From NCBI RefSeq assembly GCF_052425735.1, contig NC_135761.1, positions 8,246,001-8,310,000 of the forward strand: a stretch of DNA of 64,000 nucleotides, written 5' to 3'. This document shows positions 4,981-35,055 of the stretch, one piece after another. Position 1 is the first letter of the stretch. Each line of letters begins with the position of its first letter. A model generated the notes under the pieces. It worked only from the letters and a program-made list of their open reading frames with translations. It did not search any database and was not told the DNA's origin. Origin of the DNA: Oculina patagonica (lineage: Eukaryota). The position numbers and the translations under genes were made by a program.

Positions 4981-7962
4981 CTAGTACTGAGGTGGATCTA
5001 CTTCTTCCACAATGATCCTGCTGACGGAGTTCCAGCCAGTGTATGCGTTCCCTCGCTTAGTACCACCAGCGCAGGAACCCACATTGATTGCTACTTTGAC
5101 CGTTCCCTTAGAGATCCCTGGGCAGTAGCCCTCGATGGTAGCCGCGCGAAAGATGTTCCACGCGCCACCGGAGTAAACCACCGTGTCGATTGGCATGGAG
5201 CACTCGGCACCGTTAAATGTGAAGAACCATCGATTACAGCTAGCTGCTGTAAAGACCCGCATGTTTCCCTGGTAAACAACTCGGAGGTGAGTATTGCTGT
5301 TCCTCTTGACAAATGAGCACTCCTGATAGGAAATTCAAAAAAATCTATATTGATATCTCTTTGTCTTGAAACAAATTGTTCTCGACAATTAAATTTCTCT
5401 GTTTGGGAAGGGCACTTGAACCTAAATCATCTCTTGCGATTTTGCGCATTGTTTTCGCAAAACAAGTCAATTATTCATTCAATGAATTTGCAAATCACAT
5501 ATTTTTAAAAACGAGACGAGCCATTTGAATAAAACAGGAATCAAGCAAGTAGTTTAATTTTTATTTGGTCACTCGTTCAAAAAAAGATTGTCATAGAAGA
5601 AAGTCAGTGAATGGACAATTGGAGCGCTGTACTTAAAGGAGCGATAAAGAAAACTACGATGCATATTAGCTAGAACAGCAATCTGAAGGTTTTAAGCGAA
5701 TTGTTGAAAGTAGAGCAAAATGTGAAAAAGTCTGCCCGACGTATTCAATTTTAAGGTCATAGCCTCGCGTGTGCGTGACTTATAATTCTATCACCGATTT
5801 GAGGGTGGGGTTCTCTTAAACGCACATTTTAACTTGTGATGGATGTAACAGATGTATGTGGCACTGTAAATCGGATGTAAATGTCAAAAATGGTTTGAAG
5901 TTGACCCCCTTTAAGGGAGACGGGGTCCTACTTGAATTTGAATGAAATTTTAAGAGGTTTAAAGAAGGGGTAGAAGAAAAAAGATTTTTTGGAACACCAC
6001 CGGAGAGTTGACCTCCACGCAAGAGCACTTCAGGTTGCCAGGGGACTGTTTTTGTGTCCATCTACTACTTTTTAACTTTAAATTCCAGTTTAAAACCACA
6101 TTAAATCTTCAATTTTTCCTATTTCTCTCAATTTTACTAATCCTTTGTGAAAAAACTATTTCCTTTCAAACATCCCCAAAAATCACCCAAAAATTTACAA
6201 AACATCCCAAAACATAGCTAGATTCATGCAATGAGCGATGGGTTTTTGGATTGCTTGACACGCGAACGAGATATCTCCGTTAAACCCCGGCATGTTAAGC
6301 GGCGGAAAAACGGTCTTCGGGTGTACCCCCGCCTTAATAGCTTCAGTAGGCTAGTAAAGCAGTTTGTAACAAAACTAGATCATTATTTTAGGAGCCTGTT
6401 AAGTTTCCATGGATGTCATTATGTCTTTCGGAATTTGACTTTTCCAAGGTGTGATAGTGCCCCTTTAACTGGCTAGGCTCGCTTTGAAATATATCTATAT
6501 AATTGGCACTTACAGATATTTTTCCGTTGTCCAGGTCACTGTTTACGTTCTTCCAAGCACACTGTTTCCAGTTTGATATTCCTGAGCTTCCGGGAACTCC
6601 CGTTATTCCCGGGTCTCCTTGAGCTCCCTTATAGCCGACATCGCCCCTGTCTCCCTTCGGTCCTTGCAGGCCGTGATTTCCTGGGTTTCCTGGATTCCCT
6701 GGAATTCCGTGGCTTCCTGGGATCCCTGGGTTACCGGGAATACATCCACAGGTCTCACACTGCGATGGATTCTAAAACGTGTAATTGCACCTTGTAAACT
6801 TGTGCTAATAATGTCTAAGGAATTCAGATGCCTTATCTCGAAGGTGTTATGTTTTATTTCAAAATCAAACAACTCTACAATTGCATTTCATCGTAATGGT
6901 CGCCGTACACTAAACTTTAGGGGAATTTATCCCTTTCCTTTGTCTTCAAATGAAACTAAGCCTATTAAAACGGCTTGAAAAAAATGATAGCTGTAAGATG
7001 TACCACGACCAATCATGGCTTTTGTAAATGTTTGCCGAGTACGAAGAAAGAAACAATTTGCGCGTTTATTTGATTCAGTTGTGTAGCGTTTTTGACCACT
7101 GGATATTTAGAAAGTCAGTCTAGCATACCCGTATAAAATATCGATGATAGAGCGATACTGTGATGAGTAAAACCCGAGAACAAAAGACACGAAATCATGC
7201 AAAACAGTGCCAAATGCCGTTAAAGGGACTGTGTCAATGCTAAGTTAAGTTTATTTTATTACGTTTTGCCAAATACTCGCTATGAAACTTTTAAGTTTCA
7301 TAGCGAGTATTTGGCAAAAAAGAGTATTTCTTTGCAAACATTAAAATGTTTGCAAAGAAATTACTTCTATGGATCTAAATGACAAAACATAGCTTCATTG
7401 CAACTAAATGTGTCTCCGAGGCGTTAAAAACACTGTTCCGCCCAACAATATTCCAAAAACCCATATCGAAATCCATTTCAATCTTCGTCGCTTTTGAAAA
7501 TCCGTACCTTTTTTTGTATTTGGTGTGTTATTGGAATGTTCGTTCACTGTTGTAAGAGGCTATTTTTACATTCAACGAAATTGATGGTCATTTCCCATGC
7601 TTAAATTTAGCTAAACTCCGTGACACAGTCCCTTTAAGTCACGATGACTGCTTTTGGCTCTACTCCTGACTGGATGAAAACGCAACGTGTTTACGCCTTG
7701 ATTCTTTTGAGCTAATGTTACACGAGTTTTGGAGCCATTCACAGATTTCTTCGATATCAATTAAAAAAACCCTCTGCAACAACAAGATCGCCATAAAATC
7801 AATGTGTCGACACGAAAATTTGCATGAGTATTTCAGCACTGAGATGATACATACCTGACCAGGTGGCCCCTTTGGTTTCATTGCTTTAGCGCTGGAAATC
7901 AACTGCAGCTGTAGAATCACCAGAAAATTCAGGCAAAGAACCAAATAAATCGCCAAGGACAT
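4981..7962 (-). CDS. CTHRC1: CTHRC1-like collagen triple helix repeat protein (gene B), 235 aa
   Basis: Exons 7962-7855 (signal peptide), 6771-6514 ([10 protein letters not shown] + 18 Gly-X-Y + NWKQCAW..NGKIS) and 5322-4981 (C-terminal domain). All introns GT-AG, phase 0. Confidence 0.9.
7224..7633. mobile_element. Kolobok-type MITE in gene B intron 1
   Basis: TIR AGGGACTGTGTCA / TGACACAGTCCCT, flanked by TTAA at 7220-7223 and 7634-7637. Confidence 0.75.
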
Positions 7963-8054
7963 GACGCTTGAACGTTGTCTTCAACGGAGTAGAATTTTCA
8001 CCGACAGACACAAAGGTGCGAGATGTGATCAACTTTGATTTAAGTGCACTCCCC

Positions 8055-8062
8055 TTTATATA
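8055..8062 (-). promoter_or_regulatory. TATA box of gene B
   Basis: CCTATATAAAGGGG about 100 bp upstream of the ATG, identical in genes C and D. Confidence 0.7.
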
Positions 8063-8864
8063 GGAACATTGAGGCAGGCAGACGTTCTTCTTTTCTTCTT
8101 TCAATAAGTTAAGAACATTTAATTAGGTTTTGCTTATCTAAAGTGGTCAGCCTTGCGGCCATGAAGAATAATCTCTTTGACCTTTTAACAAAACTCCGTT
8201 TAGATATAAATCGTGCCAAGATGTTGAGCCATACGTGATACTAGCCGACATGCTTTAATTTGAAATGTTTAAAAACTGTATAGCACCCTTATCTTCAGGT
8301 AGTCAGTTGTAAATTGGTTTTTATTCTAGCGCTGAAAATGTTGTAAGTCTCACTGCTGTCCCTTTAAAAAAAACAATCCCACCCTATTCAGATCTATTCA
8401 AGCACAGCAAAAGTAATAATTTTAAAATCGCTTCACCCCGTTCCAGTCTGATGAAGTTAGAACTTAAAATTGCCAGCAAGAAGGGCCAAAAATTGTTTAG
8501 TCTTCCTAAAATGATGTATGATGTATGTAGCTTGTGAATAGGCGAGCATTTCTGTGACTGCTTTTGGAAAAGAAGATTCTAGTTTATAAAATTTTATGCT
8601 GAAATAAGACTAATCCCATCACCCCGGCATGCATCGGAAACACTCTGCACCCCGTCAAACATAACTAAAAGTTTATCTGATCTCTTCATGACAGAAATTA
8701 TAGCCAAACTGGTGATTAGATCACCGCTTTGTCCTGATTAAAAACAAACTCTTAAGTTTTAGAAAGTCAAAACCAGAATAACAAACAATTTTCGGCCTTT
8801 CTTGGTGGCAATTTCAAGTTCTAACACCGCCAGACTGTAACGGGGTGAAGCGATGTATTACACT

Positions 8865-10270: not shown

Positions 10271-10278
10271 TATATAAA
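10271..10278 (+). promoter_or_regulatory. TATA box of gene C
   Basis: CCTATATAAAGGGG upstream of ATG 10387, conserved in B and D. Confidence 0.7.
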
Positions 10279-10386
10279 GGGGAGTGCACTTCAATCAAAG
10301 TAAACCTGGACCAGATTTCGCACCTTTGTGTCTGTCGGTGAAAATTTCAGAAATTTTACTCCGTTGGAAGACAACGTTCAAGCGTC

Positions 10387-13300
10387 ATGTCCTTGGCGAT
10401 TTATTTGGTTCTTTGCCTGAATTTTCTGGTGATTCTACAGCTGCAGTTCATTTCCAGTGCTATAGCAATGAAACCAAAGGGGCCATCTGGCCAGGTATGT
10501 CTCACCTCAATGCTGAAATACTCATAAAAATTTTCGTGCCATTACACAGTGATTTTTTGGCGATCTTATTGTTGCAGAGCTTTTCTTTCAATTGACATCG
10601 AAGAAATCTGTGAATGGCTCCAAAACTCGTGTAACATTAGCTCTAAAGAATCAAGGCGTAAACACGTTGCGTTTTCATCCAGTCAGGAGTACAGCCAAAA
10701 GCAGTCATCGTGACTTCTGTGTCACGGATGTTAGCTAAATTTAAGCATGGAAAATGACCATCAATTTCGTTGAAATATAAAAATAACCTCTTAAAACAGT
10801 GAAGGAACATTCCAATAAAAAACCAAATACAAAAGAAGGTACGGATGGCCAAAAGCGACGAAGATTGAAACGGATTTCGATATGGATTTTTGAAATATTG
10901 TTCAGCTAAACAGTTTTCAAAGTTAATCTCGTTTCCTTATAACTTTAAAATTAGTTATAACGCCCGGGAGACACATTTGGTTGCAATGAAGCTATGTTTT
11001 GTCATTTAGATCCAGAGAAGTAATTTCTTTGCAAACATTAAGTTTCATAGCGAGTATTTGGCAAAACGTAATTAATAAAATAAACTTAACTTAGCATTGA
11101 CACAGTCCCTTTAACGGCATTTGGCACTGTTTTGCATGATTTCGTGTCTTTTGTTCTAGGGTTTTACTCATCACAGTATCGCTCTATCATCGATATTTTA
11201 TACGAGTACTAGTATGCTAGACTGACTTTCTAAATATCAAGTGGTCAAAAACGCTACACAGTCAGCTTAATCAAATAAACGCGCAAATTCAATGTTCCTT
11301 TCTTCGTACTCGGCAAACATTGCGGACAAAAGCCACGATCTAGGTCGTGGTACATCTTACAGCTAGTTAAGGGCAAGGGGACTCATATCATTTTATCTAG
11401 CCGTTTTAAACCGTTGCATTTCAAGACAAAGGAAAGGAATAAATTCCCCTGAAGTTTAAGTGTACGGCGACCATTATGATGAAATGCAATTGTAGAGTTG
11501 TTTGATTTTGAAATAAAACCTAACACCTTCTAGATAAGGCATCTGAATTCCTTAGACATTATTAGCACAAATTTACAAGGTGCATTTACACGTTTTAGAA
11601 TCCATCGCAGTGTGAGACCTGTGGATGTATTCCCGGTAACCCAGGGATCCCAGGAAGCCACGGAACTCCAGGGAATCCAGGAAACCCAGGAAATCACGGT
11701 CTGCAAGGACCGAAGGGAGACAAGGGCGAGGTCGGCTATAAGGTTGCTCGAGGAGAACCGGGATTTACGGGAGTTCCCGGACACTCAGGAACATCAAACT
11801 GGAAACAGTGTGCTTGGAAGAACGTAAACAGTGACCTGGACAACGGAAAAATATCTGTAAGTGCCAATTATCTAGATATATTTCAAAGCGAGCCTAGCCA
11901 GTTAAAGGGGCACTATCACTACTTGGAAAAGTCAAACTCCAAAAGACATAATGACATCCATGGAAACCTAACAGACTCCTAAAAACAATGATCTAGTTTT
12001 GTTACAAACTGCTATACTAGTCCACTGAAGCTATTAAGGCGGGGATACACCTGAAGGCAGTTTTTCCGCCGCTTAACATGCCGGGGTTTAACGGAGATAC
12101 TGATCTCGTTCGCGTGTCAAGCAATCTAAACACCCTTCGCTCATTGCATGGGTTAAGTACAAACCATTTCTGACATTTACATCCGATTTACCGTGCCAGA
12201 TACATCCGTTACATCTATCACAAGTTATTAAAATGTGGGCTTTATTGGACCTTCTCTGACCGGGGGGGAGGGCACATAGGGGGGGGGGGCTATGTAACTT
12301 CCAGAATATTGAAGCAATCACAATAAACCTATAGGATGTATAGTATGTCCAAACATCTTTCTTTTGGTATACGTCAAGTGGGATTATGACGTCACATCAC
12401 GTGACAATTACATCATGATGTCAAAACAGCCACCATCTTGGATCCGCCACCTTGGATTTCAAAATTCTTCCATAATGCCAGAAAATCACCCAAAATTACT
12501 GCAAAGTACACGAAATCAATAAAACTGTGCTTAAAAACCGTAAAAAGGTAAAAATTAATTGCATTTAAGTTAATTTTCATTAAAAGAAATACGAAAATTA
12601 CAAATATGGGAAAACATGCCTATCAAAATGCCATTGCCATGGTGATGTCAAGTTCCTGACACAACATCCTATCCTACCAAATTATTCCCAGATAAATTTT
12701 AAATAAACTCACAAAGTTTGGCAGGGTTTGGTTGAATCTTGAAAAAGTTATAAGCGTTCAAAGTCAGCGCGGGCCTCAAAAGCACCCCCCCCCCCCGGTC
12801 TGAATAGGGTTAAGAGAACCCCCCACCCTCAAATGGGTGATAGTATCATAAGTCACGCACACGCAAAGCCATGACCTTAAAATTGAATAAGTTGGGCAGA
12901 CCTGTTCCCATCGTGCTCTTTTGTCTTGGAAAAATCGCTAAAAAATTTGCTCTACTTCCGTCAACAATTCTCTCTCAGTTAGTTCTTCCACAACCTCGAA
13001 CTGATTATCTCGAGAAAAGTTTTTCGTACAGCGGAGCTCAGTTGTGGAACAACTTACCTATAGACCTAAGACAAGCATCTTCACTTGCCGATTTCAAATC
13101 TAAATTAAGTCGGCACAGTTTAAAGTAATATCTAAATTTTAAGTAAATTTTAGACACGGCCTCCATGAAAAGCAGACTTTTCTTTTGTTATTTGAATTTG
13201 TTGTTATTAAATTTTTGTAGTTAGTTAGATAGGTAGATAGTCCAGTAACTTAATTGACTGATGGAAAAATCGTGTATAAATAAAGTTATCTTATCTTATC

Positions 13301-14518
13301 TTATCTTAAAACCTTCAGATTGGTGTTCTAGCTTATATGCATCGTAATTTTCTTTATCGCTCCTTTAAGTACAGCCCTCCAATTGTCCATTCTTTCTTTC
13401 TTTGTACAAGTGACCCAATAAAAATCAAACTTACTTGCTTGATTCCTGTTCTATTCAAATGGCTCTTCTCGTTTTTAAAAATATGTGACCTGCAAATTCA
13501 TTGAATGATTAATTGATTTGTTTTGCGAAAACAATGCTCAAAATCGCGAGAGATGATTCAGGTTCAAGTGCCCTTCCCAAACCGAGAAATTTAATTGTCG
13601 AGAACAGTTCGTTACAAGACAAAGATATATCAATATAAATAGAGGATAATACATGGTTGCGCGGAGATATGAAATTTATCTTGGAGTGCTGAAATCGATA
13701 TCTCACTCGATCGCCGCGCTCACTCGTGAAATATCGATTTGAACACGAGAAGAAAAATTTTATATCTCCAAGCAACCATGTATTATTTTGTTTATTATAT
13801 AAACCTACTAATTACGAGATTTTTAAAGATTTTCCGAAGATTTCCAACGATTTTCCGAAGGTTTCCGAAGATTTTCAAAATGTTGTTCGAAGATCTTACG
13901 AATGTTTCCGAACATTCTCCGAATTTTTCCGAAAATTTCCGAAGATTGCCGAAGATTGCCGAGGAAGATCCAAAGATGTTTCGACTTAATATCGATAAAC
14001 TTTGCTTTATTGAGCATTGAAACATGGCAAACTCTGCGAGCTGATCGGTCAAAAATGATATCACACATGTGTGGATATCATTTTTATCCACACGTGTGAT
14101 ACTATTTTTATTGACTTGCTACCACTCGCTATACCACTGCAGTTTATATAATATATATTATTTTTGAATTTCCTACCAGGAGTGCTCATTTGTCAAGAAG
14201 AACAGCAATACGCACCTCCGAGTTGTTTACCAGGGAAACATGCGGATCCTTACCGGAGGTACCTGTAACCGATGGTTCTTCACATTTAACGGTGCCGAGT
14301 GCTCCATGCCAATCGACACGGCGGTTTTCTCTGGTGAATCTGCGAACATCATTCGCACGGCTTCCATCGAGGGCTACTGTCCAGGAATCTCCAGAGGCAG
14401 AGTAAAGGTGGCGCTCAATGTAGGTTCCTGTCCAAGCATCAGGCGAGGGAACGCATACACTAGCTGGAACTCCGTCAGCAGGATCATTGTGGAAGAAGTG
14501 GATCCACCTCAGTCCTAG
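10387..14518 (+). CDS. CTHRC1: CTHRC1-like collagen triple helix repeat protein (gene C), 234 aa
   Basis: Exons 10387-10494, 11599-11856 (collagen with one Gly->Val) and 14180-14518. GT-AG, phase 0, open frame. Confidence 0.88.
10717..11110. mobile_element. Kolobok-type MITE in gene C intron 1 (same insertion as 7224-7633)
   Basis: Right TIR TGACACAGTCCCT+TTAA is intact. The left TIR has lost its outer bases. Flanks match those in gene B. Confidence 0.7.
12241..12809. mobile_element. piggyBac-like MITE, gene C-specific
   Basis: Ends CCCCCCGGTCTGAATAGGG+TTAA, left end degenerate. Genes B (~5815) and D (~25680) show the empty TTAA site. Confidence 0.6.
12973..13305 (+). mobile_element. 5'-truncated CR1/L2-group LINE, 3' fragment
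   Basis: Peptide LVLPQPRTDYLEKSFSYSGAQLWNNLPIDLRQASSLADFKSKL is typical of the CR1/L2 ORF2 C-terminus. It is followed by AATAAA and a (TTATC)4 tail. Absent from gene B intron 2. Confidence 0.75.
13635..14158. mobile_element. Non-autonomous element with internal TTCCGAAGA-type tandem repeats (family uncertain)
   Basis: An insertion relative to gene B just upstream of exon 3. It has a palindromic 5' part and a 9-11 bp tandem array at 13830-13965. Confidence 0.6.
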
Positions 14519-17443: not shown

Positions 17444-19652
17444 TAAAGGGGGTGTCTTGTATCGTGGAAACAGTTTACAGTGAAGCCCCGTCAATATTCG
17501 ACCATCTTATTGCACGACTAATTTTAGTCAAAGGTCCAATAACTAAAATCAACCAATGAAATTGTTCCATTGCCGGTCCAATATTTTTATGTATTGAACC
17601 GCATATTGCAGTCGTGGTTGTTTTATAGATTATTTTTTTAACTGCGAGATATATATTAAAGAAGAATATTACACGATCCGGTATGTAATAGAAGTGTGAA
17701 ACTAATTAATTTGTGGCCGCGGCCGTTTGTTTTCTTTAATAAATTTTTGAGAGTCTCGTTTGATTCTTAAAAGTACCTCATTGCGACATTTATGGGTTTA
17801 GAGCAGCCTTTTCGCGAGGGGACTATATACAGCTTTATACCAGAAAATAAGGAGAGCTGATCATTTGCATGGAATTTTCGGTGAGTTCTTTTCGCGGCAA
17901 ATGGCACAGTTCTGAAAGGTGCTGTTACTTTTGAAAATTCCATTTCTTACAGATAATACGCGCGTACTTTTTACGAATTCCGTGGCATTTGTGGCCGCGG
18001 CTGTTCGTTTTCTTTTAATTTTGAAATAGTGTCTCGTTAGTGTCTCGTTAGTGTCTCCTGGGATAGCTTCCACAGTGCCATTTAAATTCCGGATTAATCG
18101 GTTTTTCCGAAAAAAATATGTAACCGGATTACGGTACCTTTATACAAACCGAGAATGTGGCTAGTGTAGATGTGTTCAGAGGAAAAATACAGCGGAATGT
18201 ATAAGATGATCCAGGTGATTGCAATGTTATAGAACGATGTGAAAATAGCTAACGTGGATTCTATGTCAGTATAAAAACTATTTTCCTTTCGTGCAAAGAA
18301 GCTTTCAGGTTAATGATCGTTTACATTCCTACAAAATACCTGTATCGTTTCTTAGACACACCTCATTTAAGCTTTTAGCGGACCTTTTAGGCAAGCTAAT
18401 ATGTGATACGTTTGATAAACGGTTTGGCGATTCTTGGCATGTGGAGCAAAAATACCTCAAATAACCCTGAGGATTTCTAACTACAAGCTACAAGGAAATA
18501 CACAAAAGTGAAATAAACAGTTCTGACATCAACCTAGTAACCACATAACCACATTCTGCTAAAGAGTCTTTTGACCAGCCTCTCGTCCCCAGCGTAGCCC
18601 CAGCGTCTACTTCTTGTCCCCAGCGTAGCTTGTCCCTTTTAGCCAGCGGGGCTTTTGAACGAGCCACTTTCTTTGCTCTGGGGACAAATGATTTGAATGG
18701 CTAGATTTTAACAAACTGATTTAAATCCCTTTTTTATAAGAAAATTTGAAACAGCTAATTAATTATTGGCTAGATTTCAAAATCCTTTTGTTAAAAACTA
18801 TCCAGTCAAATCATTAATTCGTCCCCAGAACCACTTGTTCTTCGTGCAAAGGCCTCGCCGGCTAAGAGGGACAAGCGGCTCAGGGGACGAGAATGAACGA
18901 ACCTAGTAACCACGCTTCTCATTCCCCTCAGAATTTGAGACGACGCCAAGTAGCGATGTCGTGAAGTTTAAGAAAACACCTTGGGATTAGGCTGGCTGTT
19001 TGTTAACAGGTCTTTCTTTTTCCCTCTTCCATACTTTTTGCATTCTCGAATTTATTTCTCGAACATATTTTTTCCAGTAATGTGAGATTTTGAATAGAAA
19101 TTCTGTGAGGTATCCGTGATCAAGAGTAAATTGCATCACCGGCCGAAAAGAGATTTGAGTGCGTAGATAAAATACATCTCAAGTAGCTAAGATAAATCCA
19201 TTGAGGAAAGCGGCCAATATAGTTTGATTAGAGTCTTTGTATTGCGTACGTTTACTGAAGAGATGCACTTACGGGAGGCGGTATTTGTACTTTCATCTAA
19301 ATTAAATGTTGTAAAGACCATTCATTTCCCTTCTTCTTTTTTAGAAGGTACAGCAGTCCCGAGACTTTGGACTTTGCAACATTTTCAGCGCTAGGAAAAA
19401 CTCAATTTGCAACACACTACCTCAGAATAAGGGTGCTACGTAATTTTACGTAGCTGACATCAGTTATATTTAAACATGCAGGCTAGTTTCACGAATGGTC
19501 CAACAGCTTGGCATGATCTTGTCTACACGGAATTTTGTTTAAAGGTCAAAAAGTTTATTCTTCGTGGCGTCGCAAGGCTGTCCACTTTAGATAAGCAAAA
19601 CGTAAATAGATGTTCTTATGGAAAAAAGCACGTCTGCCTGCCTCACTTTTCC

Positions 19653-19660
19653 TATATAAA
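19653..19660 (+). promoter_or_regulatory. TATA box of gene D
   Basis: CCTATATAAAGGGG 100 bp upstream of ATG 19753. Confidence 0.7.
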
Positions 19661-19752
19661 GGGGAGTGCACTTCAATCAAAGAGAGCCTGGTCGCAGCCT
19701 TCGTGTCAATCGGTGAAAATTTTACTCCGTTGGAAGACAACGTTCAAGCGTC

Positions 19753-22700
19753 ATGTCCTTGGCGATTTATTTGGTTCTTTGCCTGAATTTTCTGGTGATT
19801 CTACAGCTGCAGTTGATTTCCGGCGCTATAGCAGTGACACCAAAGGGGCCACCTGGTCAGGTATGTATCATACCAGTGCTGAACAACAAATTAAACATGA
19901 TACCTCCCGGTATCTGGGAGGCCATGGGTTTAATTCCCGTCGGGGATTCAGATTTTTTTTTCTTTGTCCCACACTCGTGTCATGTTGAACAATTTCTTCA
20001 CTATATATCACCAAGCTTAAAATTTACCATCTTTATTATTTACAACAAATTAAACATGGTTTTTAAATACGTTAACACTCGTGCAAATTGCTTTGCTCTG
20101 TGAATTGCTCCAAGAATCGTGTAACATCAGCTCTAAGTGATCAAGGTGTACACAGGCTTCAGGACTTGACGGCATTTGGCACTGGTTTGCATGATTTCGT
20201 GTCTTTTGCTCTCGGGCTTAATATCACTTATCACAGTATCGCCCTATCGATCAAAGATCATCAAAGAGATTTTATACCAAGTGGTCGAGAACGCTGCAGC
20301 TTAAAATGAACGTGCAAATTGTCAGGCTTTTTTCGCACTCGGGAAACATTTTTATAACATAGCTAGCAGAGCCGCGCAATCAAATTCAGTATACGTAAGC
20401 GTGCTCAAAATCCCGATGGAGCACGCTGATGACGTAATCGACGAGCGAAAATCTCACTGAGTAAAGCTCATACGCTGCGGGTGTTTTGCTAAAGCGATGA
20501 CATATTATCTTCGGAATATGAAAAGTGAATCCTTTCAATATTTTCCCAAGGATACGAACTACAAGGTAAGCTGTTTCTTATTACCAGACGGAGAGCGAAA
20601 GAGAAAATAAATTCGATTTTGCCGTCAAAGTTGTTTGTGTGCTTTCCTTCATTCAAACAACAACAACTAACGTGCGAGTCTCGAAGGACGAAAATCATTT
20701 TTTCACTGCCCTAACGTGGAAGAATGGGCCAACCATGAGTGACAACAGCTCGATGGCACTAAAAACTAGCTGCCTGACGAAAGTTTTCGCGTTTTAAGCA
20801 TTACACCAAAGCGTCTACGGCTCTGTTGTGATTTTGCCGCTCGGGAAAAATTAAAACTTCATCGGGCGCTTCATTCAACTACCGTTTACAAAAATGTTTA
20901 TTTACATCAATTACAAATAAAATCGGTCCACAAAAATACTTAAAACTAAGCATGGAACCGAATTCTTTGACTCTTTTAACCCTTGGAATCTGTTCGGCTG
21001 TTCGAGGTTGTTTTGTTTTAATTTTCTTCCACGCGGGAGTAAACATTTTAATTTTAATTCAGCGAAAACTTGTTTCAGAATCAACAGCAGTATTTGCTGT
21101 TTTTGTCATTTTTTTTCTTCGCTCTGCCACCGTATAAACTTAAATTAGTCAATTTATCAGCCATTTGACACAAACTGCTCCAATCGTGTAAACTTGTACA
21201 TGTGTAATTTATTACTCGACCGCTAAGTTTACGTTCTCACACTGCACACAATAAACAGTTTTTTTTCCGCGGCCGGTTTTGATGCACAATTCCACCGGCA
21301 ATGTTATAAAACAATTGGTTCATGCTTTTAGCTGTGCTCCATCGAGTTATGGAGCACTTGGGAAGTTTGGAGAGCACTCAAGAAGCTAGAGTTGCCCTCG
21401 GCTATCGCCTCGGGCAACTCTTCCGCTTCTTTCGTGCTCTCCAAACTTCCCGCGTGCTCCATAACTCGATGGAGCACGCTAAAGCATGAACCAATTGTTA
21501 ACGAAAGCCCTGATCTAGGTCGTGGTACACCTTATATAGCTAGTTAAGGACTAAGGGACTTATTTTTCTACCAGTTTTAATAAGTTTGGCTACCTTTCAA
21601 TTATTCAAGTCAAAAGAAAGGGATAAATGAAATGAAATGATACGAAAGATAAGAGCCAAATTAAGTTAAATGATATTACCGTTTCACTGAAATCTGTATT
21701 TGTTACCTGATGTACACTGTAAAGGTGGATTTCCACTGTCGCGTTTTTGTTGACGCACGTTAACGTACGTAAAAATTGTAAACGTACGTATAAATGAAAT
21801 TTTACGCGCGTAATTACGTGCGTCGAATTTACGTTGTCCAATTTCCAATGTCACGTTTTTTTCTTGGTATTTACGTACGTTACACGCACGTTTACGCAAG
21901 TAGCGATCGCGAGTGTTTTCAAAAAAGTTGAACTGAGCTCAACTTTTTTCGCGGCTGTCTGCGGTTACGCAGCGATTTACCCAATCATACTTTTGGATTT
22001 TGTCACATGACACCACTTACCATGTGGAAAACCATTATGTTTTAAATTGCCGTCGATTTACATAGAAAAACATTCAGATGTAGAAGCACTTCTCATCGAA
22101 AAAGTCCAAACATTTCCAGCAATAATCTATAGAACTGACTACAGAACCAAATTACACGAACGCAATAGTATAAGAAAACGCCTGGCGTCAGGTCACGGGC
22201 TTTCAACCGGCAATCCGGGAAGGTCGCCTAAAATCTTTTTTTACTTGATGGTGTCTTTCGGAAGTGCCTCTTGGTCATATTCACGCATTTTTTTTTTACT
22301 AGCGTGTGGTACAAAGTGTTTTCATGGCAGCCATGTTGGAAGAGTCAAACAACAAGATATTTGCATAAAAATGTTAATGATTTTTTTCCCAAAGGAAAAA
22401 CAATTCATTGTTTCACTCCTCCAATATGGCCGCCAATAACACACTCTATTCGCCAACTTGATAATTCAGGATGGCGGGCATTTACGTCCGTTCAACGCAC
22501 GTAAAAAAAACGCTTTTTACTACTTTTTTCGCGACAGTGGAAATTTGCCTACGTATCTTTTATTACGCACGTTTTACGTACGTAAATATTTACGCGTCAG
22601 TGGAAATCCACCTTAACTCTGTAAGGACAAGGAAATAAATCCCGACAAATAAAAGAAAGTTTTGATAAGGGGTAAACATAAGCTTAATAAGTAAAACTCA

Positions 22701-24271
22701 CAAATTTTAACGTTTGTTATACTGGGACGAACAACAACCATTATTATACATTAGAATTACTTTGAAACATGTGATTGGTCGAGAGTATTCAGTCAATATT
22801 CAGTAGCGTGTGAACTCGACATGATAATCCAATATCTGCAGCAGATATTGGGTTATCATGTCGAGTTCAAAGTCCGCCTCGTTTCCAAGCCCCTCGTCCG
22901 TGTAGTGCTGTCAAACTTTTGAAAATATGGCTGAGCGATTCGCCTCCGTTTCCGAAGAGGAATTGAAAGTTTTGATCGAGAATAAAGATTGTAAAAACAC
23001 CAAGAGAACAATAAAAGCAAGTGTAAAAATTCTGAATGATTATTTGAGAGAGAAGAACCTGGAGGAACCACAAGATAAAACCGCTTTGGCCAATGTTCTG
23101 ACGAAGTTTTACGCCGGCGCAAGAAAAAGTGATGGCAAATTGTTTGGAAAGGTATAATAAAACAATTATTGAATTTGGTTTTCGCATGGTATCGTGAATT
23201 ATCAAAACCTCGTGTCTGTGTTATCTGCCTCAGCCTTCGGCTTCGGCAGATAACACAGACCTCGGTTTTGATAATTCACGATATCATGCTCAATCTCATC
23301 CAATAATTGCTTAATATCGTTCCGATCACAAATTCTCCGCCACTCCAGTCTCTCCTTGTTAACAAGTTGCTGTTTGCCTAGGATATTTTTAATCAAAAAG
23401 GCGACCATTACTTTTTGGCATCGAAAGAAAACTATTTGTTTGTCTCACGTCAGGAGGAGCATGACAGAAGGATTCGTCTGAACAGTTCTTCCTTTTCCAT
23501 GCAATATCTGAATTTTTTTCGAATTGAACGTTCTACGTCCTTATTCTTTAACATCGAAGTTATAACTTCGTTTTCTGTTTTACAGCCGTCTGAACGAAGA
23601 CGTCAAAAAGGAGAGACAGCGGGCTTTACGTGCCGTCGCCTCACGTGCTTCAGTGAAATTTATCATTTTTGTTCGCATATAAACGGCGCATTTGCTTGTC
23701 TCGCTTTTGAACAACTGCAAATTATTTTTACTTTTTGAATAGTACTACATATTTGTATACCCCTTATTTTTATTTTCTATCTAATTTGTCGCGATTTATT
23801 TCCTTGTCCTTACGTTGTACACAGAATACATCAGGCAACAGATGCGGATTTCAGTGGAACGGTAATATCATTTAACTTAATTTGGCTCTTATCTTTAATA
23901 TCATTTCGCCATTTCGTGTTTTTATTATAAACACGCCCGCCAACCATTATGATGAAATACTGTACGCTTGGAGAGTTGCTTGATATTTTGAGATAAAAAA
24001 ACAAGGCCTCTAAATTCCTCACAAGTGAGGAATAATTTTTCTTTCTTTTAAATTAGATTAGATTTTAGATTCACAGATGTATAGCTACTATGTAGAGAAA
24101 CTGTGTATTCTCTATTTTCCAATTGCCCATAATACACTTTGTTTGCCCCCAAATTTTGCATAAACTATTGTTTTCAAATTCTCTTGGGAGGACTGCATAT
24201 TTCCAAAACAATAGTTTATGCAAAATTTGGGGGGCAAACAAAGTGCATTATGGGCAATTGGAAAATAGAGA

Positions 24272-24324
<53 letters not shown>

Positions 24325-24933
24325 AAATGTCGTATGGTTTTAAAATTGCTTGTTTCAGAATCCATCGCAGTGTGTGGCTAGTGGATGTGTTCCGGGAACT
24401 CCAGGGATCCCAGGCAGCCAAGGAACTCCAGGGAATCCAGGAATCCCTGGAAATCCAGGAAATCACGGCATGCCAGGACCGAAGGGAGACAGGGGCGAGA
24501 TTGGCTTTAAGGGAAGTGTAGGAAGCCCGGGAATTATGGGACCTCCCGGGAGCCCAGGAACATCAAACTGGAAACAATGCGCTTGGAAGAACGTAAACAG
24601 TGACCTGGACAACGGAAAAATATCTGTAAGTGCCAACTATCTAGATATATTTTAGAGCGAGCCTAGCGAATCAATAAAAGGGTCACTACGCATCACTACT
24701 TCTTAAACAATTGTATAGTATGTATGTAATTATACATCGACGCCAGATACCGTTAGTAATGTAATTTATACAACAGTAAATAATGTAACTGTATTGTAAT
24801 CGTATTGTCATATTAGCAACCATGTTTTTGTAAACAAAGTTTTTGTTTTGTATGTGTGTGTGTGTACTGAAATGAATTATAAAAAAAAATCACTACTTTT
24901 AAAAGTCAAACGCCAAGAGACATAATAACATCC

Positions 24934-24967
<34 letters not shown>

Positions 24968-27202
24968 TAATGATGATGATGATGATGATGATGATGATAC
25001 TAAACGAATCTTTAAACAGGATTAAACCATCAGTACTTGAAAGGACTGTTATCATAGGGGTCCTGTGAGATTTAAAAGATTTGAAAAAAATTAAAAAAGT
25101 TAAAACTACAAAAACACTTTAAAAATTTAAAAAGCCTAACCAACATGGGAAAAACATATAAAAATATAAAAAAAACATTTAAAAATTTACAAATAAAAAA
25201 AATGGCCCCTAAAAATAATTGCCAAAAATGGGTCCTTAAAATAATGATCTAGTTTTATTACAAATTGCTATGCTAGTCCACTGAAGAGGCCGTTTTTCCG
25301 CCGCTTATGGATTTTTACGGAAATATCTCGTTCGCGTTTCATGCAATCCATGCAGAAACCTTTCGCTCATTAGATTAAGCTTTTGGACGTTTTGTAAATG
25401 TTTGGGTGATTTTTGGTGGTGCTGAAGGAATTTTTTTTTTCAAAAAAGAAAAAGGATTCGTTAAATTGAGAGAAATAGGGAATAATGCAGATTTAATGTA
25501 GTTTTGAAATTGGAATTTGCAGTTAAAAATTAGTAGATGAACACCAAACGGTCCCCTGACAACCTAGGATGCTCTTGCGTGGAGGTCAACTGTCAGATGG
25601 TTTTCCAAAAATAATAATTTACATCCGATTTACAGTGCCAGATACATCCATTACATCCGTCACAAGTTGAAATGTGCGTTTAAGAGAACCCCAAAACAAA
25701 TCATTAGTTAAACCAGTTGCTTGATTCCTTTTCTATTGAAATGGTTTTCAATCACGTATTTAAAAATATGTGATCTGCATATTCATTGAATGATTAATTG
25801 ACTTGTTTTGCGAAAACAATGCTCAAAATCTCGAGAAATGATTTAGTATCAAGTGCCCTTCTCACATTGAGAAGTTTAATTGTTGAGAACAATTTGTTAC
25901 AAGACAAAGATATATCAGTATTTAGAATATACTAAACGGCAGTGGACAGCGTTTTTTGGCGCGCGCTGATTGGCTACGCAAATTCCGAATATCCTTTGTC
26001 ATTAAAAACTAGCAATGGAATACAGTCAACTCTCTCTCAACGGACACCTCTGTAAGACGGACACCTCCATAAGACGGACACCTGGTGATGGTTCCTGCTG
26101 TTTTTCAGTCATTTAACTGTAACCAAACTCCCTATAAGACGGACACCTCTCTAAGACGGACAACGGACACTTTGAAATCATTAACGGACACTTGAGAAGT
26201 GTTTTTTTTTTAATGTTTTATTACGGAAAATACTGCCAAACTTCGCAAAGTTAGTCCGCGCCCTAAAGATACGTGTATACCAAGCTTACTAACCACAAAC
26301 AATGACGCTTTAACGGATTACTTTTTTGCTTACGTATATGGACACTAAAGAGGTCATTCTCCACTTACAGTATTACAGTTTGTAGAAGCTCTCAATTTTT
26401 ACTTTAAAAAGCAAACACGGTCCTTTTATTATTTTTTTTAGTCTTGTTGCAGTTAGCAAAGGTTTGTTGCACTGTGCAAAGGTTTAGCTTTATTATCTCA
26501 AAATTACTGGTGTCATGTTACCTCGACTCTCTACAGAGCGGACACCTCTCTAAGACGGACAGCTGCGGGCCGGTCCCGAAGGTGTCCGTCTTAGAGAGAG
26601 TTGACTGTATTGAAATTCCGGCGTTTTGATTGGTCAACAGGCAATGGTACATGAGCTCATATACCATTGACCACAAATTTTGTAGCCGATACGCGTCAAT
26701 GAAAATAGCTGAGGAGCTCAAATATTGCAATTATTTGGGCGTTTTTAATAAAACAATTATTTCACTCGCGCTTGTTGGATATGAGAACGTTATAGCCAAC
26801 TAGCCACTTTCTCAGACACTTTCACTGTGAATAGCTGTTAAATATTATTTTGGAATTTCTTATCAGGAGTGCTCATTTGTCAAGAAGAACAGCAATACCC
26901 ACCTCCGAGTTGTTTACCAGGGAAACATGCGGGTCTATACAGCAAATACCTGCAACCGATGGTTCTTCACATTTAACGGTGCCGAGTGCTCCATGCCAAT
27001 CGACACGGCGGTTTACTCCGGTGGCGCGTGGAACATCATTCGCGCGGCTACCATCGAGGGTTACTGCCCAGGCATCTCCAGGAGTACAGTCAAGGTGGCG
27101 CTGAATGTTGGTTCCTGTGCTGGTTACACCCGAGGGAACGCATACACTGGCTGGAACTCCGTCAGCAGGATCATTGTAGAAGAAGTGGATCCACCCCAGT
27201 AG
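19753..27202 (+). CDS. CTHRC1: CTHRC1-like collagen triple helix repeat protein (gene D), 236 aa
   Basis: Exons 19753-19860, 24359-24625 ([10 protein letters not shown] + 19 Gly-X-Y + NWKQCAW..NGKIS) and 26867-27202. GT-AG, phase 0. Confidence 0.9.
20352..21500. mobile_element. Gene D-specific insertion ending in a ~190-bp palindrome (possibly a Crypton-associated non-autonomous element)
   Basis: Interrupts sequence that is contiguous in B/C intron 1. 21310-21500 is an imperfect palindrome (AACAATTGGTTCATGCTTT..AAAGCATGAACCAATTGTT). Confidence 0.6.
21723..22613 (+). mobile_element. PIF/Harbinger deletion derivative with MADF/Myb-like remnant
   Basis: TIR AGGTGGATTTCCACTG / CAGTGGAAATCCACCT with 3-bp TAA TSD. 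Internal peptide [23 protein letters not shown] (ORF 22047) resembles a MADF N-terminus. Confidence 0.75.
22927..23157 (+). pseudogene. Crypton tyrosine-recombinase transposon, N-terminal fragment
   Basis: [53 protein letters not shown] resembles the N-terminal region of Crypton/DUF3504-family proteins. It is truncated by a palindromic element at ~23157-23310. Confidence 0.65.
24107..24273. mobile_element. Palindromic MITE
   Basis: Arms of ~60 bp: ATTCTCTATTTTCCAATTGCCCATAAT.. / ..ATTATGGGCAATTGGAAAATAGAGAAT. Confidence 0.75.
24272..24323. repeat. (ATT)n microsatellite
   Basis: About 17 perfect ATT units, 35 bp upstream of gene D exon 2. Confidence 0.95.
24934..24998. repeat. Compound (TAA)n(TGA)n microsatellite
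   Basis: Direct reading. Confidence 0.9.
26023..26607. mobile_element. Tc1/mariner-type MITE nested in another insertion (~25925-26840)
   Basis: TIR CAGTCAACTCTCTCT / AGAGAGAGTTGACTG, TA TSD, internal AAGACGGACAC repeats. Confidence 0.85.
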
Positions 27203-28435
27203 TAGCACGCCGGTTAAAATCAGAATCTCTTCGAGCTAGTGTTCAAGTTTTGAAAACAGATCGTCTTGTTTGTCTTACGGTAGCTGTAGATTAGAGATGA
27301 TTAAATAAACACAGCTGTGAAAAGAGATTATAATAGAAAAACAGTGAATTTTAGTGTCAAGCTCTCACGTTGCTATGCAAAGCTTTGATTTCGACCCCTC
27401 AAGTTCTGAATCAATCCTCTTTTTATGCTGAAATCGCGAGCCGAGGAGCCGAAAATCGAGCCACTTGTCGGTTTTGTCCCCTTTCCATCCCGTTGCGCAC
27501 CTCTGGATGCGCTGCAACCTGACCTTACTTACAATGATACTCGCAAAAAGACGTTTACTTTGATTTTTCATGATGTCTCCAAAATCAGAATATATCGGGG
27601 AGCTAATCGGATTGCAAGTAACGTACCCTCGATCTCGGCTGAGACGACTAACGACAACGAATAGGGAGAAATTATAGAAATTATTACTGTTTCGGTTTAT
27701 TTCCGTGACGTTAGACCTCACCACAACTGGTATTGTGAAAAATTTTATTATTCTAACATGATACAAGCAGTCGTAAGTCAGATCTTAAGGCTAGCTTCGT
27801 CCTTCTGTTCATTTTCACTGCCTTTTGTTTAGCGACGTTGTCGTTATTTTCGTAGTTTGGGCTTATATCAGTACAAAGTCTTTTTTAAACCCATGTCCCA
27901 TATTTAGTGGGAAATATCTGGAAGCTTAACAGACGCATCCCCCCTCCCCCACCCTCTTTCTTCTCAACTTGCGCTCTCTATAAGTTATGTACCCAGTTGT
28001 GCATCTAGGCATAGGTAACAGATCTTTTGTGTTTTCACATCATCTCGCAAGAGGACCTGTTTTAATACTTTTTATTGTCGCGGCTCTTTTATTTGTCAAC
28101 GTCACAGTTTCGTTAAAGATTCGTAAAAATTAAACAGGCGAGTTCAAAAAGTTTTCAAAGACAAGGTAAATATTGCCCAGAATTCACCAATATATTTTAA
28201 GCGGTCGATCACTTTTGCGAACTTTTGGCCACACTAAATTTGGATGACAGATTCTTGAATCAGAAAGTTCAACGTTACCTTTAGTCACACTTCTTAAACA
28301 AAAAGATATTTACCAAAACCATTCGAGCTCTTATACAAAAATATCGAGGGATGATCAGGTTGAAGATTCACATGGCTGCTAAATCTCGTGTCTCTTATTG
28401 TGAGGACAGTATACAGTGAAACAAGAACGCTTTGA

Positions 28436-28995
28436 ACAAGAATCCCGCTCAACTCTTTATTTGTTGCGAAGACGCGAACTAAAGCTTTGAACATGAAATA
28501 CCGCAGGTAACTATTTGTTGCGAAGACGCGAACTAAAGCTATGAACATGAAATACCGTTTAACTTGTTCTTCGTTGTGAAGACGCGAACTAAAGCATTGA
28601 GCATGAAATCCATGAAAAACCGCTAAACTTTTTATTCGTTGTTAAGACGCGAACGTAACTAAAGCATTAAGCATGAAATACCGCTTAACTCTTTATTTGT
28701 TGCGAAGACGCAAACTAAAGCTTTGAACATGACATACCGCTTAACTCTTTATTCGTTGCGAAGATGCGAGCTATTAAAAGTATTGAACATGAAGTACCGC
28801 TTAACTTTTTATTCGTTGTGAAGACACGAAACGGCGCTTTGAAAATGAAATCCCGCTTAACTTTTTATTTGTTGGGAAGACGCGAACTAAAGCATTGAAC
28901 ATAAAATACCGCATAACTCTTGAACATGAAATACTGCTTAACTTTTTGTTTGTTACGAAGACGCGAACTAAAGCTATGAAAATGAAATCGCACTA
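28436..28995. repeat. Minisatellite, ~56-62 bp unit, about 9-10 copies
   Basis: Approximate consensus CCGCTTAACTCTTTATTTGTTGCGAAGACGCGAACTAAAGCTTTGAACATGAAATA. Confidence 0.9.
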
Positions 28996-30803: not shown

Positions 30804-31723
30804 ATGTCGAGGGCGATTTTTTCTGTTCTTTGCCTGACTTTCCTGGTGATTCTTCAGCTGCAGTTTATCCACAGCGCTAAAGCCCGGAAGATATCAAAAT
30901 GGAAACAGTGTTTTTGGAAAAGTCTGAGCAGCGACGTCGACGAAGGCAAAATATGCGTAAGCGTTCTTCCAGCTTTACATTGTACATAGCTTGTTATTAT
31001 GAAAGGAAGGAGAAAGAGGTCGCCCCTCGCGTCTCGTTTTTCTCGTTGACCGTTCTTTTAGTCACCAAAAAAAAAAACTCCCGTCCAATGTTTCCAAAAT
31101 TAATAAACATAATTCGGCAAAACTTGCTCTACTGTAATGGTCCGTACTGCAAAATACCAACCTTCCATCATGCTTATCTTTACGAAATGATCGAATGAAT
31201 CGAATCTATCGAATGAAAGTGATGTAACACATACGTTATTACTTTTTTTCTATTACATGATAATTATGATTGTCATAAGTTTCGCTTTAGTAAAGTTTTA
31301 TGCTTTTGCAATACTGTATGTATTTATAGTCGTACAAATAAAGCTTGTTGTTGTTGTTGTTAATAAGTGTGTTTTATTTTCCGATTAGGAATGCGCCTTT
31401 GAAAAGCAGAGAAACAAGACCTACCTCCGAGTTGTTTACCAGGGAAACATGATTCAGAAGCTAGCTGTAACCGATGGTTCTTCACATTGAACGGCGCCGA
31501 GTGCTCCGTACCAATCGACACGGCGGTTTACTCTGAAGGCAAATGGAACATCATCCGTACAGCAACCATTGAGGGTTACTGCCCAGGAATCAACAAGGGC
31601 CCTGTAAAGGTGGGGCTCAATGTGGGTTCCTGTGAGGGTTACACGCGAGGGGACGCATATACCGGCTTTAAGTCCGTGAGCAGGATCATCATAGAAGAAG
31701 TGGAGCCTCCCCAGGAGAGTTAA
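30804..31723 (+). pseudogene. CTHRC1: CTHRC1-like collagen-less gene E, frameshifted
   Basis: Exons 30804-30956 and 31389-31723, close paralog of gene A. After ATG 31449, CGCGTCTTT is replaced by AT (net -7 nt), giving TGA at 31488-31490. Confidence 0.8.
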
Positions 31724-33477: not shown

Positions 33478-35055
33478 ATGTCGAGGGCAATTTATTTGGT
33501 CCTTTTCCTGAGTTTCCTGGTGATTGTACAGTTGGTCCACAGCGCTAAGCTGAGAAAGCGACTGCAAGGCGCGGTAGGTATCAGTACAAAGAATTAATTC
33601 CACTGACACCTAAATTAAATAATTCAGTTTTCTGCCTGCTCTGAACCTCTAACTATACTAAATTTTAATATTTTTCCGCAACAAGGACGACAAAACACCG
33701 GTTGGAAAGCACAGACGCGCCAGGGGATTAAACTGGAAACAGTGTTCTTGGAATAACCTAAACAGTGAAGTGAACGACGGGAAAATATGTGTAAGAGCTA
33801 TTCATTACAGAACTATGTGTTTGTGAAACGAATGTTCAGTCAGATGAATCCTAAACCTACCTATTGAACTGCTCCTTCGACAAATTTGATTGATTTAAGC
33901 GTGCATGATTCAAGCCGTCTTCTCTGGTCGCTTTAACTCCCGAAGCAAGAAGATGATCGAAATTCAGGCTAGATTGATCGAGACCACGAAACGAGAACAT
34001 AGAAGTGAAACCACTTCTGCTTTAGTGGCGAATTTCTTGGTCTTTGTGATACATTTTAAATTTAGCTATTACATAATTTACACCAGAAAAACTTGAGAAA
34101 ATCTCTAGCTTAAACGTGTAAATTCAAGTTTAACATTTACAGACGTTTCTTGGGTATGGTGGCTTCCCTTAAAAAGAATAAGAAAAAAAAAACGCAATAC
34201 TTTTACCTCGGATGTAGACGCTTTCGGTCGATCCTTCAACACGCGTGTGAGAAATTTTTTTTCTGGTACCCAGCTAGTTTTTGTCTCTCACTGCTATACA
34301 AAGGACACATAAGACTGAAAAAATTCGAAAACATATAAGGAAAGTTTAAGGTAAACTCACCAATATTTAGATTTAAGCAAGCCTAAAAGCGGAGCTCCCA
34401 ATTTGATTTTCCCTGGAGTTTACGATGTGTCCATTCTGATAAATATGCGGCCCGGGTGCAAGACAAATTTAAATCGCTCATGGTTAAAATATATAATAAT
34501 CTTGAGGCAGAACAACTCATGTTACTAAAAATTAAGAGTTAATTCTCTGCTTTCTAATAATAGAAAATAGTTTCAAGATCCCCTTGAATATAATTCGTGG
34601 ACAAATATTCCCGTCTCTCCCGTTTCTTGCGCGAAGTTGTTTCTTTCATCGGTTGCTTGCGTACGCAAATCAGAATTTAAAATTTAAACTCACTATAAAA
34701 ACTGGTTATATATTTTTAATTTCTGCTTTAGGAATGTTCATTTGACAAAGATTGGAGCGAAACACATCTCCATGTTGAATATAAAGGAAACATGAAGGTA
34801 TTGACAGAATCCGCCTGTAACCGATGGTTCTTTACAATCAACGGCGTCGAGTGCTCCGCACCAGTTGACACGACGGTTTACTCTCAGGGCAAAACTATTT
34901 TTGAGGGATACTGCTCAGGAATAAACAAGGGTCCTGTTAAAGTGGAGCTCAATGTGGGTTCCTGTACTGGTTACACGAGAGGGGACGTGCACACTGGCTG
35001 GAACTCCGTGAGCAGGATCATCGTGGAAGAAGTAGAACCACCCAAGGAAACTTAG
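33478..35055 (+). CDS. CTHRC1: CTHRC1-like collagen-less secreted protein (gene F), ~174 aa
   Basis: Exons 33478-33573 (signal peptide, donor GTAGGT), 33686-33790 (DDKTPVGKHRRARGLNWKQCSW..DGKIC, AAG acceptor) and 34732-35055 (C-terminal domain with a 6-aa in-frame deletion). Confidence 0.78.

Follow-up and report, generated by a model that had tools for sequence, protein, structure and literature searches.

A 64,000-nucleotide stretch of the coral Oculina patagonica genome (C4:8246001-8310000, from the chromosome-scale sequence C4 of a 529 Mb assembly; the whole of this stretch is called the window below) contains six tandem genes of the CTHRC1 family, here lettered A to F, which differ from one another most visibly in three short loops of an otherwise conserved C-terminal head domain. 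Across the much larger family to which they belong, amino-acid-changing sites on one face of that head evolve approximately 2.5 times faster than those elsewhere on it, and the acceleration is concentrated in the same three loops, which structural models would place at the tip of the head, the end remote from the stalk. The reading that best accommodates these observations, and which as a whole we consider to have an even chance of being correct, is that of a birth-and-death family of secreted trimeric heads with a diversifying contact surface at their tips. The signals of selection that bear on this reading come from sister clades of the window genes, and the principal alternative, a relaxation of constraint on exposed loops, is weighed against it below.

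Six CTHRC1-family genes

A tblastn search with the head exon of gene D as query located six copies, with the gene models given here (positions are those of the window).

Gene A, 943-1932 (-): exons 1780-1932 (signal peptide and first head strand, without Gly-X-Y) and 943-1284 (head); head match 952-1224 (-).
Gene B, 4981-7962 (-): exon 1 7855-7962 (signal peptide), exon 2 6514-6771 (Gly-X-Y and NWKQC strand), exon 3 4981-5322 (head); head match 4987-5262 (-).
Gene C, 10387-14518 (+): exons 10387-10494, 11599-11856 and 14180-14518; head match 14240-14512 (+).
Gene D, 19753-27202 (+): exons 19753-19860, 24359-24625 (collagen) and 26867-27202 (head); head match 26927-27202 (+).
Copy E, 30804-31723 (+): stalk-less like A, with head exon 31389-31723; head match 31463-31714 (+).
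Gene F, 33478-35055 (+): exon 1 33478-33573 (signal peptide), putative exon 2 at about 33686-33790, head exon 34732-35055; head match 34792-35046 (+).

Membership in the CTHRC1 family was established by profile comparison, in which the D head exon matched Pfam PF25815 (CTHRC1_C) at 135.2 bits (cut-off 27; E=2.4e-39), the start of that profile extended into D exon 2 at 26.7 bits, just below the 27-bit cut-off, and exon 2 itself matched Pfam Collagen (E=1.7e-11). These were the only Pfam matches of D at E<=1, with no match to a C1q or TNF profile. The characteristic CTHRC1 architecture (a signal peptide, a short collagen region and a C-terminal head) is present in B, C and D, each of which consists of three exons encoding, respectively, the signal peptide, a collagen segment of about 19 Gly-X-Y triplets that closes with the first head strand, and the head; it is absent from A, E and F. 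The products of C and D correspond to annotated proteins P0158 (ACROYT_G011858, 234 amino acids) and P0156 (ACROYT_G011859, 236 amino acids), the latter with a 100% match across all three exons, and exon 1 of gene B is followed by the donor CAG/GTATGT.

In A and E, as indicated by tblastn and translation, the signal peptide is fused straight to the sequence 'NWKQC...' without intervening collagen, and in F a short basic linker takes the place of the stalk. Gene A accordingly encodes a stalk-less CTHRC1_C protein of about 164 amino acids (tblastn with the P0156 exons, in-frame translation and a GTAAGC donor), while the putative second exon of F carries the basic linker and the NWKQC strand, again without Gly-X-Y, behind an acceptor that is itself putative. 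Since A, E and F are devoid of a Gly-X-Y stalk, any trimer that they form would need to be held by the head alone. The head of copy E has an 8-nucleotide deletion relative to A after 'YQGNM' that places it out of frame, and this copy would appear to be either a pseudogene or an assembly error. The head exon of every copy opens at cag/GAGTGC (translated 'ECSF...'), 60 nucleotides 5' of the ATG used in an initial annotation of this DNA.

Exon 1 of each of B, C and D sits inside a longer conserved block with overlapping open reading frames, at 7660-7962 (-), 10284-10595 (+) and 19476-20103 (+), and the promoter and first-exon region of these three genes seems to have been duplicated as one unit. 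B and C are oriented head to head.

Three variable loops on a conserved head

The initial annotation, made by inspection of the sequence, had proposed that differences between paralogs cluster in three short segments of the head, and had quoted those segments for A, B, C, D and F. All 15 of the quoted strings were recovered exactly by tblastn and translation, at the following positions.

D loop 1, RVYTANT, 26930-26950 (+); C-D loop proper, YTANT.
D loop 2, YSGGAWNII, 27014-27040 (+); E-F loop proper, SGGAWN.
D loop 3, CAGYTRG, 27116-27136 (+); G-H loop proper, CAGYTRGN.
C loop 1, RILTGGT, 14243-14263 (+).
C loop 2, FSGESANII, 14327-14353 (+).
C loop 3, CPSIRRG, 14429-14449 (+).
B loop 1, RVFTAAS, 5239-5259 (-).
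B loop 2, YSGGAWNIF, 5149-5175 (-).
B loop 3, CAGGTKRG (one-residue insertion), 5050-5073 (-).
A loop 1, RVFSEAS, 1201-1221 (-).
A loop 2, YSEGKWNII, 1111-1137 (-).
A loop 3, CEGYTRG, 1015-1035 (-).
F loop 1, KVLTESA, 34795-34815 (+).
F loop 2, YSQGK (six-residue deletion), 34879-34893 (+).
F loop 3, CTGYTRG, 34963-34983 (+).

Both of the in-frame length changes that had been described, the one-residue insertion in B and the six-residue deletion in F, proved to be real, and the motifs CNRWFFT.NG.ECS, EGYC.GI and SVSRII.EEV are indeed unchanged across all copies. The five listed copies exist as described; the list had missed the frameshifted sixth copy, E, and had placed gene A within positions 4981-35055, an interval outside which that gene lies. 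Two more variable stretches, 'VKKNSNTH' and 'PGISRST', had not been mentioned, and both are base loops.

The proposal of clustering held for part of the set. Variable columns among A, B, C, D and F occupy 20 of 24 loop positions versus 37 of 89 positions elsewhere (Fisher p=2.3e-4). The loop windows had been picked after inspection, and the comparison was therefore repeated as a column permutation in which chance was allowed its best three windows. When so corrected, the clustering among all five paralogs was not significant (P=0.23), because A and F differ from the others along their whole length; in the close trio of B, C and D it was (P=0.003), with 14 of the 23 variable columns inside the 23 loop columns. 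Clustering is thus a property of close paralogs.

Predicted fold and position of the loops

An AlphaFold2 model of the D head was obtained with a mean predicted local distance difference test (pLDDT) score of 94.5, and could be superimposed on the AlphaFold model of human CTHRC1 (Q96CG8) with a template-modelling (TM) score of 0.90 and a root-mean-square deviation (rmsd) of 1.3 Å over 141 residues at 47% identity, both structures being predictions. A search of PDB sequences with the head returned no match at E<=10. The model of a paralogous head (pLDDT 94.6) was structurally closest to the Pgp3 C-terminal domain (Z 12.5), PLTL (12.2) and BclA (10-11), followed by a group of proteins at Z 9.3-10.0 that comprises EDA-A1 (10.0), collagen VIII NC1 (9.4), C1q (9.3) and the C1q domain of Caprin-2. 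The head is confidently predicted to be a jelly roll of the TNF/C1q type.

The strands of the D model span residues 11-17, 26-35, 41-52, 58-65, 75-79, 86-96, 102-112, 121-123 and 128-136, and they bracket the three variable segments exactly, such that these are true loops and correspond to the C-D, E-F and G-H connections. Since the domain has eight main antiparallel strands and its two termini share an end, the three variable loops should emerge at the far end, as should the A-B loop. This strand parity and the predicted trimer contacts described below would place all three at a common apex, far from both termini, in line with the initial suggestion of a single face; on this geometry, that face would be the tip, on the side of the head away from the stalk.

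A homotrimer prediction for one paralogous head (P0027:136-279, not a protein of the window itself) gave a score of 0.94 versus 0.27 for the best control. The same mark was passed by 21 of 30 proteins solved as one-chain pairs and by none of 23 solved as single chains, in a calibration that used two copies and mostly microbial proteins, and the pass may reflect memory of known C1q and TNF trimers. Runs shared at least 98% of their contacts, with partner pLDDT of at least 90. The predicted contacts group residues 3-11, 98 and 140-144 at the base, place strand F along the three-fold axis from loop 2 down to the base, and bring residues 81-82 and 86-87, which flank loop 2, and 116-118, where loop 3 starts, against the neighbouring subunit, with loop 1 outside the interface. 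On these predictions, the CTHRC1_C head would most likely form a trimer.

The family across the genome

At least 150 CTHRC1_C head exons, all at E<=1.4e-24, were scored among 257 candidates in the genome. They are clustered on C1 (8.1-9.2 Mb), C4 (16.4-23.6 Mb), C10 (12.8-13.1 Mb) and C3 (29.9 Mb), with others on C14, C5 and C7; 146 of the 150 have an open frame and four contain stops. These exons fall into ten clades, with the window genes in clade 1, and show an entropy across the family of 2.16, 2.70 and 1.85 bits in the three loops versus 1.11 bits elsewhere. When columns were instead assigned from the structural model, entropy was 2.37 bits in the tip loops, 1.34 in the base loops and 1.08 in the strands. 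Per-column variability in the window clade was correlated with the within-clade entropy of the other clades (Spearman 0.59, p=1e-11), a replication that indicates that the identical three segments are variable across the whole family.

Loop 1 also distinguishes subfamilies. A C-x-x-C-C motif, located before RW at D head-exon residues 23-30, is retained, with at least three cysteines, by seven of the ten clades (118 of 146 copies), while clades 1 (the window clade), 2 and 3 have a single cysteine there. This single-cysteine form is a subfamily trait and does not exclude its bearers from the CTHRC1 family. The window clade and clade 3, both of the single-cysteine form, are also those with the highest tip-loop ratios of nonsynonymous to synonymous divergence (dN/dS).

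Rates of change and tests for selection

When the head was divided according to the structural model, family-wide dN/dS was 0.51 in the tip loops, 0.19 in the base loops and 0.20 in the strands. The acceleration is specific to a single end of the head rather than shared by all of its loops. Clade by clade, Nei-Gojobori counts on independent sister pairs put the ratio for the three loops at 0.24-0.49 in the majority of cases, at 1.06 for the window clade and at 1.42 for clade 3, with scaffold values of 0.14-0.36.

Site models were fitted to eight clades, clade 4 (six genes) being left out, with a codon-likelihood program of our own that was checked against an IQ-TREE M0 tree (branch-length scale 1.00). 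The comparison of a nearly neutral model with one that allows a positively selected class (M1a versus M2a) gave the following values of twice the log-likelihood difference (2dlnL).

Clade 10 (32 genes): 46.8.
Clade 7 (31 genes): 37.7.
Clade 6 (11 genes): 34.4, from one extreme site.
Clade 2 (7 genes): 25.4.
Clade 8 (11 genes): 24.8.
Clade 3 (14 genes): 23.3.
Clade 9 (25 genes): 7.0.
Window clade (7 genes): 0.0.

The positively selected class was thus favoured in seven of the eight clades, with omega (the dN/dS of that class) of 2.6-4.2 at 3-13% of sites, except in clade 6, where a single runaway site makes up less than 1%. Among 31 sites with posterior probability above 0.95, 24 were located inside the three loops (Fisher p=9e-11), and the tests remained significant when every gapped column was removed. 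In clade 3, the M7 versus M8 comparison gave 2dlnL 30.3, fixed-effects likelihood (FEL) identified about ten positive sites, and a tree-free bootstrap of the tip loops gave dN/dS of 1.65 (0.96-3.02; P(<=1)=0.037).

Interpretation and alternatives

Under the reading that we favour, the window holds a tandem birth-and-death cluster of CTHRC1-family genes, a minor part of a family with at least 150 copies. Every gene encodes a signal peptide and a CTHRC1_C head, with a short collagen stalk between them in B, C and D and none in A, E and F. Purifying selection would maintain the strands and base loops as well as the contacts between subunits, while the tip loops would be free to vary after each duplication, by point substitutions and small in-frame indels, with the outcome that the germline comes to hold a repertoire of heads that have a common scaffold and differing tips. 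The tip would then most likely be the ligand-contacting face, with each paralog directed at its own extracellular target, for instance a glycan, the matrix or a microbial surface, as has been proposed for the expanded C1q-domain lectins of bivalves.

A number of results weigh against this reading. In the window clade, M1a and M2a fit the seven sequences equally well. Enlargement of the clade to 15 sequences, by addition of seven relatives from other corals, raised 2dlnL to 1.46, which is not significant, and the corresponding M7 versus M8 value of 6.99 reached only p=0.03, with omega of 1.75 at 8% of sites. Tip-loop dN/dS in this clade was 1.28 (bootstrap 0.67-2.58), and the base loops were also elevated, at 0.89. 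In the majority of clades, dN/dS averaged over the loops stays under 1; columns chosen because they were selected elsewhere had omega of 0.33-1.09 in held-out clades when cross-validated pairwise; and FEL returned two to three positive sites in each of clades 10 and 7, the two largest, which is the level expected by chance. Synonymous divergence is somewhat raised in the loops (0.30 versus 0.22-0.25), possibly as a result of misalignment or of paralogs exchanging sequence, and the four-gamete test is failed by 27-48% of site pairs; recombination may thus inflate site models that assume a single tree. As to function, the tip loops show no aromatic enrichment and hence no compositional hint of a sugar site, the literature searched contains no experimental report of microbial or glycan ligand binding by CTHRC1 heads, and spliced RNA contigs that might have served as proof of expression of gene D were rejected for that purpose, their letters and first exon being those of a twin on chromosome 7 (see below).

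The principal alternative is that the loops have experienced relaxed constraint only, redundant copies tolerating any residue in exposed tip loops, with a fold that permits change and no selection for specificity. This explanation is possible, though less probable than the one above. In the window clade, 42% of sites are assigned to omega=1 with no class above it, the tip-loop ratio (1.06-1.28) does not differ from 1, the base loops are likewise high, and one of the six window copies already appears to be a pseudogene (four of 150 are pseudogenes across the family); to these may be added the weak FEL and cross-validated tests. However, the family-wide constraint on base loops equals that on strands, so that loop status by itself is insufficient to account for the acceleration; seven of eight clades favour a class with omega>1 that is concentrated in those same three loops; the tip loops of clade 3 exceed 1 in a test that uses no tree; and the great majority of head exons remain open, with loop indels that stay in frame. 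Site models of the kind proposed in the initial annotation gave a divided answer, with sister clades supporting a class above 1 and the window clade not doing so in M1a versus M2a and reaching only p=0.03 in M7 versus M8, and its alternative of relaxation comes close to describing the window clade. In the window copies the tip loops change at a near-neutral rate, so that for these six genes the data are compatible both with a diversifying contact surface and with simple relaxation of the tip.

The NC1 and C1q heads of collagens VIII and X and of C1q A, B and C are known to govern the assortment of their chains, and loop 2 and the start of loop 3 might likewise form a code that decides which paralogs co-assemble, as homotrimers or heterotrimers, rather than specificity for an external ligand. 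The predicted interface does take in residues that flank loop 2 and begin loop 3, the many co-located paralogs could in principle mix, and assembly of the three window copies without a collagen stalk would rest on the head. Yet that interface leaves out loop 1 as well as the central parts of loops 2 and 3, the strands that form it are strongly conserved, and there is no evidence of co-expression, and we consider this explanation improbable. Similarly poor prospects attach to the proposal that hypervariability and omega>1 are by-products of gene conversion or unequal exchange combined with alignment error in indel-rich loops: it would explain the raised synonymous divergence, the four-gamete failures, a significant result in clade 8 (P=0.0015) of a recombination test resembling the pairwise homoplasy index (PHI) and the mosaic structure of one chromosome-7 copy, but the PHI-like test is not significant in six of seven clades, the M2a signals survive removal of all gapped columns, and the clustering is seen in the ungapped comparison of B, C and D.

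If the preferred reading of a diversifying contact surface is taken a step further, the coral CTHRC1 family could be a germline recognition repertoire whose trimeric heads, by means of three hypervariable tip loops, discriminate microbial, symbiont or allogeneic surfaces, with the stalk-less A and F as soluble variants; it would then be a cnidarian counterpart, independently evolved in a different protein family, of the bivalve C1q-domain-containing (C1qDC) and snail FREP systems. This extension is speculative and we think it rather unlikely as stated.

Relation to known systems

CTHRC1 has been studied almost exclusively as a single, slowly evolving vertebrate gene linked to Wnt and planar-polarity signalling, collagen deposition and cancer. 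Corals have no adaptive immunity and must sort symbionts from pathogens, and O. patagonica is a classic species for the study of bleaching induced by Vibrio. Within the literature searched, there was no report of hypervariable loops or positive selection in CTHRC1, or of a family of this size. A fast-evolving tip points to a putative second use of the CTHRC1 fold, as a diversifiable binding module, and if it were true that the tips bind microbial or glycan ligands, the family would add a new candidate class to the pattern-recognition molecules of corals. The idea is directly testable, because nature has supplied loop-swap variants in B, C and D, whose scaffolds are nearly identical.

The closest precedent, and the only comparative paper on the family in the literature searched, is the analysis of Leclere et al. 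(2020, PMC7058181), in which the CTHRC1 head was modelled as a C1q-like beta-sandwich compatible with a trimer, lineage-specific duplications were described in anthozoans, with up to 31 Cthrc1 copies in corals, and the head was called highly conserved with no mention of positive selection. The O. patagonica proteins are similar to that family in their signal peptide, short Gly-X-Y stalk and CTHRC1_C head, and in the resemblance of the D head to the human model. They differ in number, at least 150 head exons making the family at least five times larger than that reported coral maximum (PMC7058181), in the loss of the loop-1 C-x-x-C-C motif from the window clade, and in the absence of a stalk from three of the six window copies.

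Bivalve C1qDC proteins offer a second comparison. Hundreds of tandem genes encode secreted jelly-roll heads in which the fold and subunit contacts are under strong purifying selection, while episodic positive selection acts at 4-11 sites per cluster (5-10% of sites), partly shared between clusters and enriched in a gap-rich region; this diversification has been proposed to widen the range of microbial patterns recognised (Gerdol et al. 2019, PMC6835236; reviewed in PMC10672478). The coral family shares with them a large tandem expansion and a conserved, predicted jelly roll, and the site models point to localised candidate sites of selection in clades other than that of the window. It differs in belonging to CTHRC1_C, with no C1q match in Pfam, in its occurrence in Cnidaria, and in having eight main strands rather than ten; furthermore, some bivalve proteins have been shown to bind, whereas the coral members are known here from sequence and models.

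Bacterial TNF-like trimers (the C-terminal domain of Chlamydia Pgp3, the lectin PLTL, the N-terminal domain of the lectin BC2L-C, and BclA) gave the best structural matches to the head (Z 10-12.5, rmsd 2.2-2.9 Å over 114-123 residues). All are trimers and two are glycan-binding lectins, but identity is only 8-18%, with no evidence of common descent, and likeness of fold shows no function. The loops had also been likened in the initial annotation to the complementarity-determining regions (CDRs) of antigen receptors. As a description this is apt, since in immunoglobulins, T-cell receptors and lamprey variable lymphocyte receptors, as here, short loops on a conserved beta scaffold hold most of the variation, indels included. 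As a mechanism it does not apply, since the coral variation is germline and lies between paralogs, with one inherited sequence per gene, no rearranging segments, a different fold and oligomeric state, and no evidence of somatic mutation or templated conversion. Read data examined over one stretch showed no sign of somatic diversification, each variant being a separate germline gene.

Expression, the chromosome-7 twin and other features of the window

RNA-like contigs from two runs contain, at high depth, a GT..AG joint equivalent to 24625>26867 of the window, which confirms the splice between the collagen and head exons. The spliced contigs differ from D at about 3% of positions and carry the 'TAAT' loop 1 of its twin on chromosome 7 (L002), which is 96.8% identical to D over 3.3 kb, including the intron; their first exon does not occur in the window and is found only at C7:1491319. 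The twin seems to be the expressed copy. The twin and a neighbouring copy, L004, occupy C7:1503289-1513695 and were compared with positions 24106-28681 of the window. L004 is a mosaic at the scale of exons, its collagen exon being 95% like that of D and its head exon about 80%.

Relatives from other corals are present as uninterrupted transcript contigs. The closest foreign relative of D, from another coral (L161, ENA assembly ERZ25067872), is about 90% identical and is without head-exon residues 24-38 in frame order, so that it looks broken there. Within intron 2 of D, positions 25851-26850 reach a word depth of 2000-3800 in RNA-like contigs and are most likely a transcribed repeat, and a (TTA)n-type microsatellite lies at 24263-24331, just 5' of the D collagen exon. 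Elsewhere in the window, an intact 914-residue open reading frame of a non-LTR (long terminal repeat) retrotransposon at 46886-49630 (-), with an endonuclease/exonuclease/phosphatase domain and a reverse transcriptase (RVT_1, E=2e-34), sits in a GC-rich stretch with strong AT skew.

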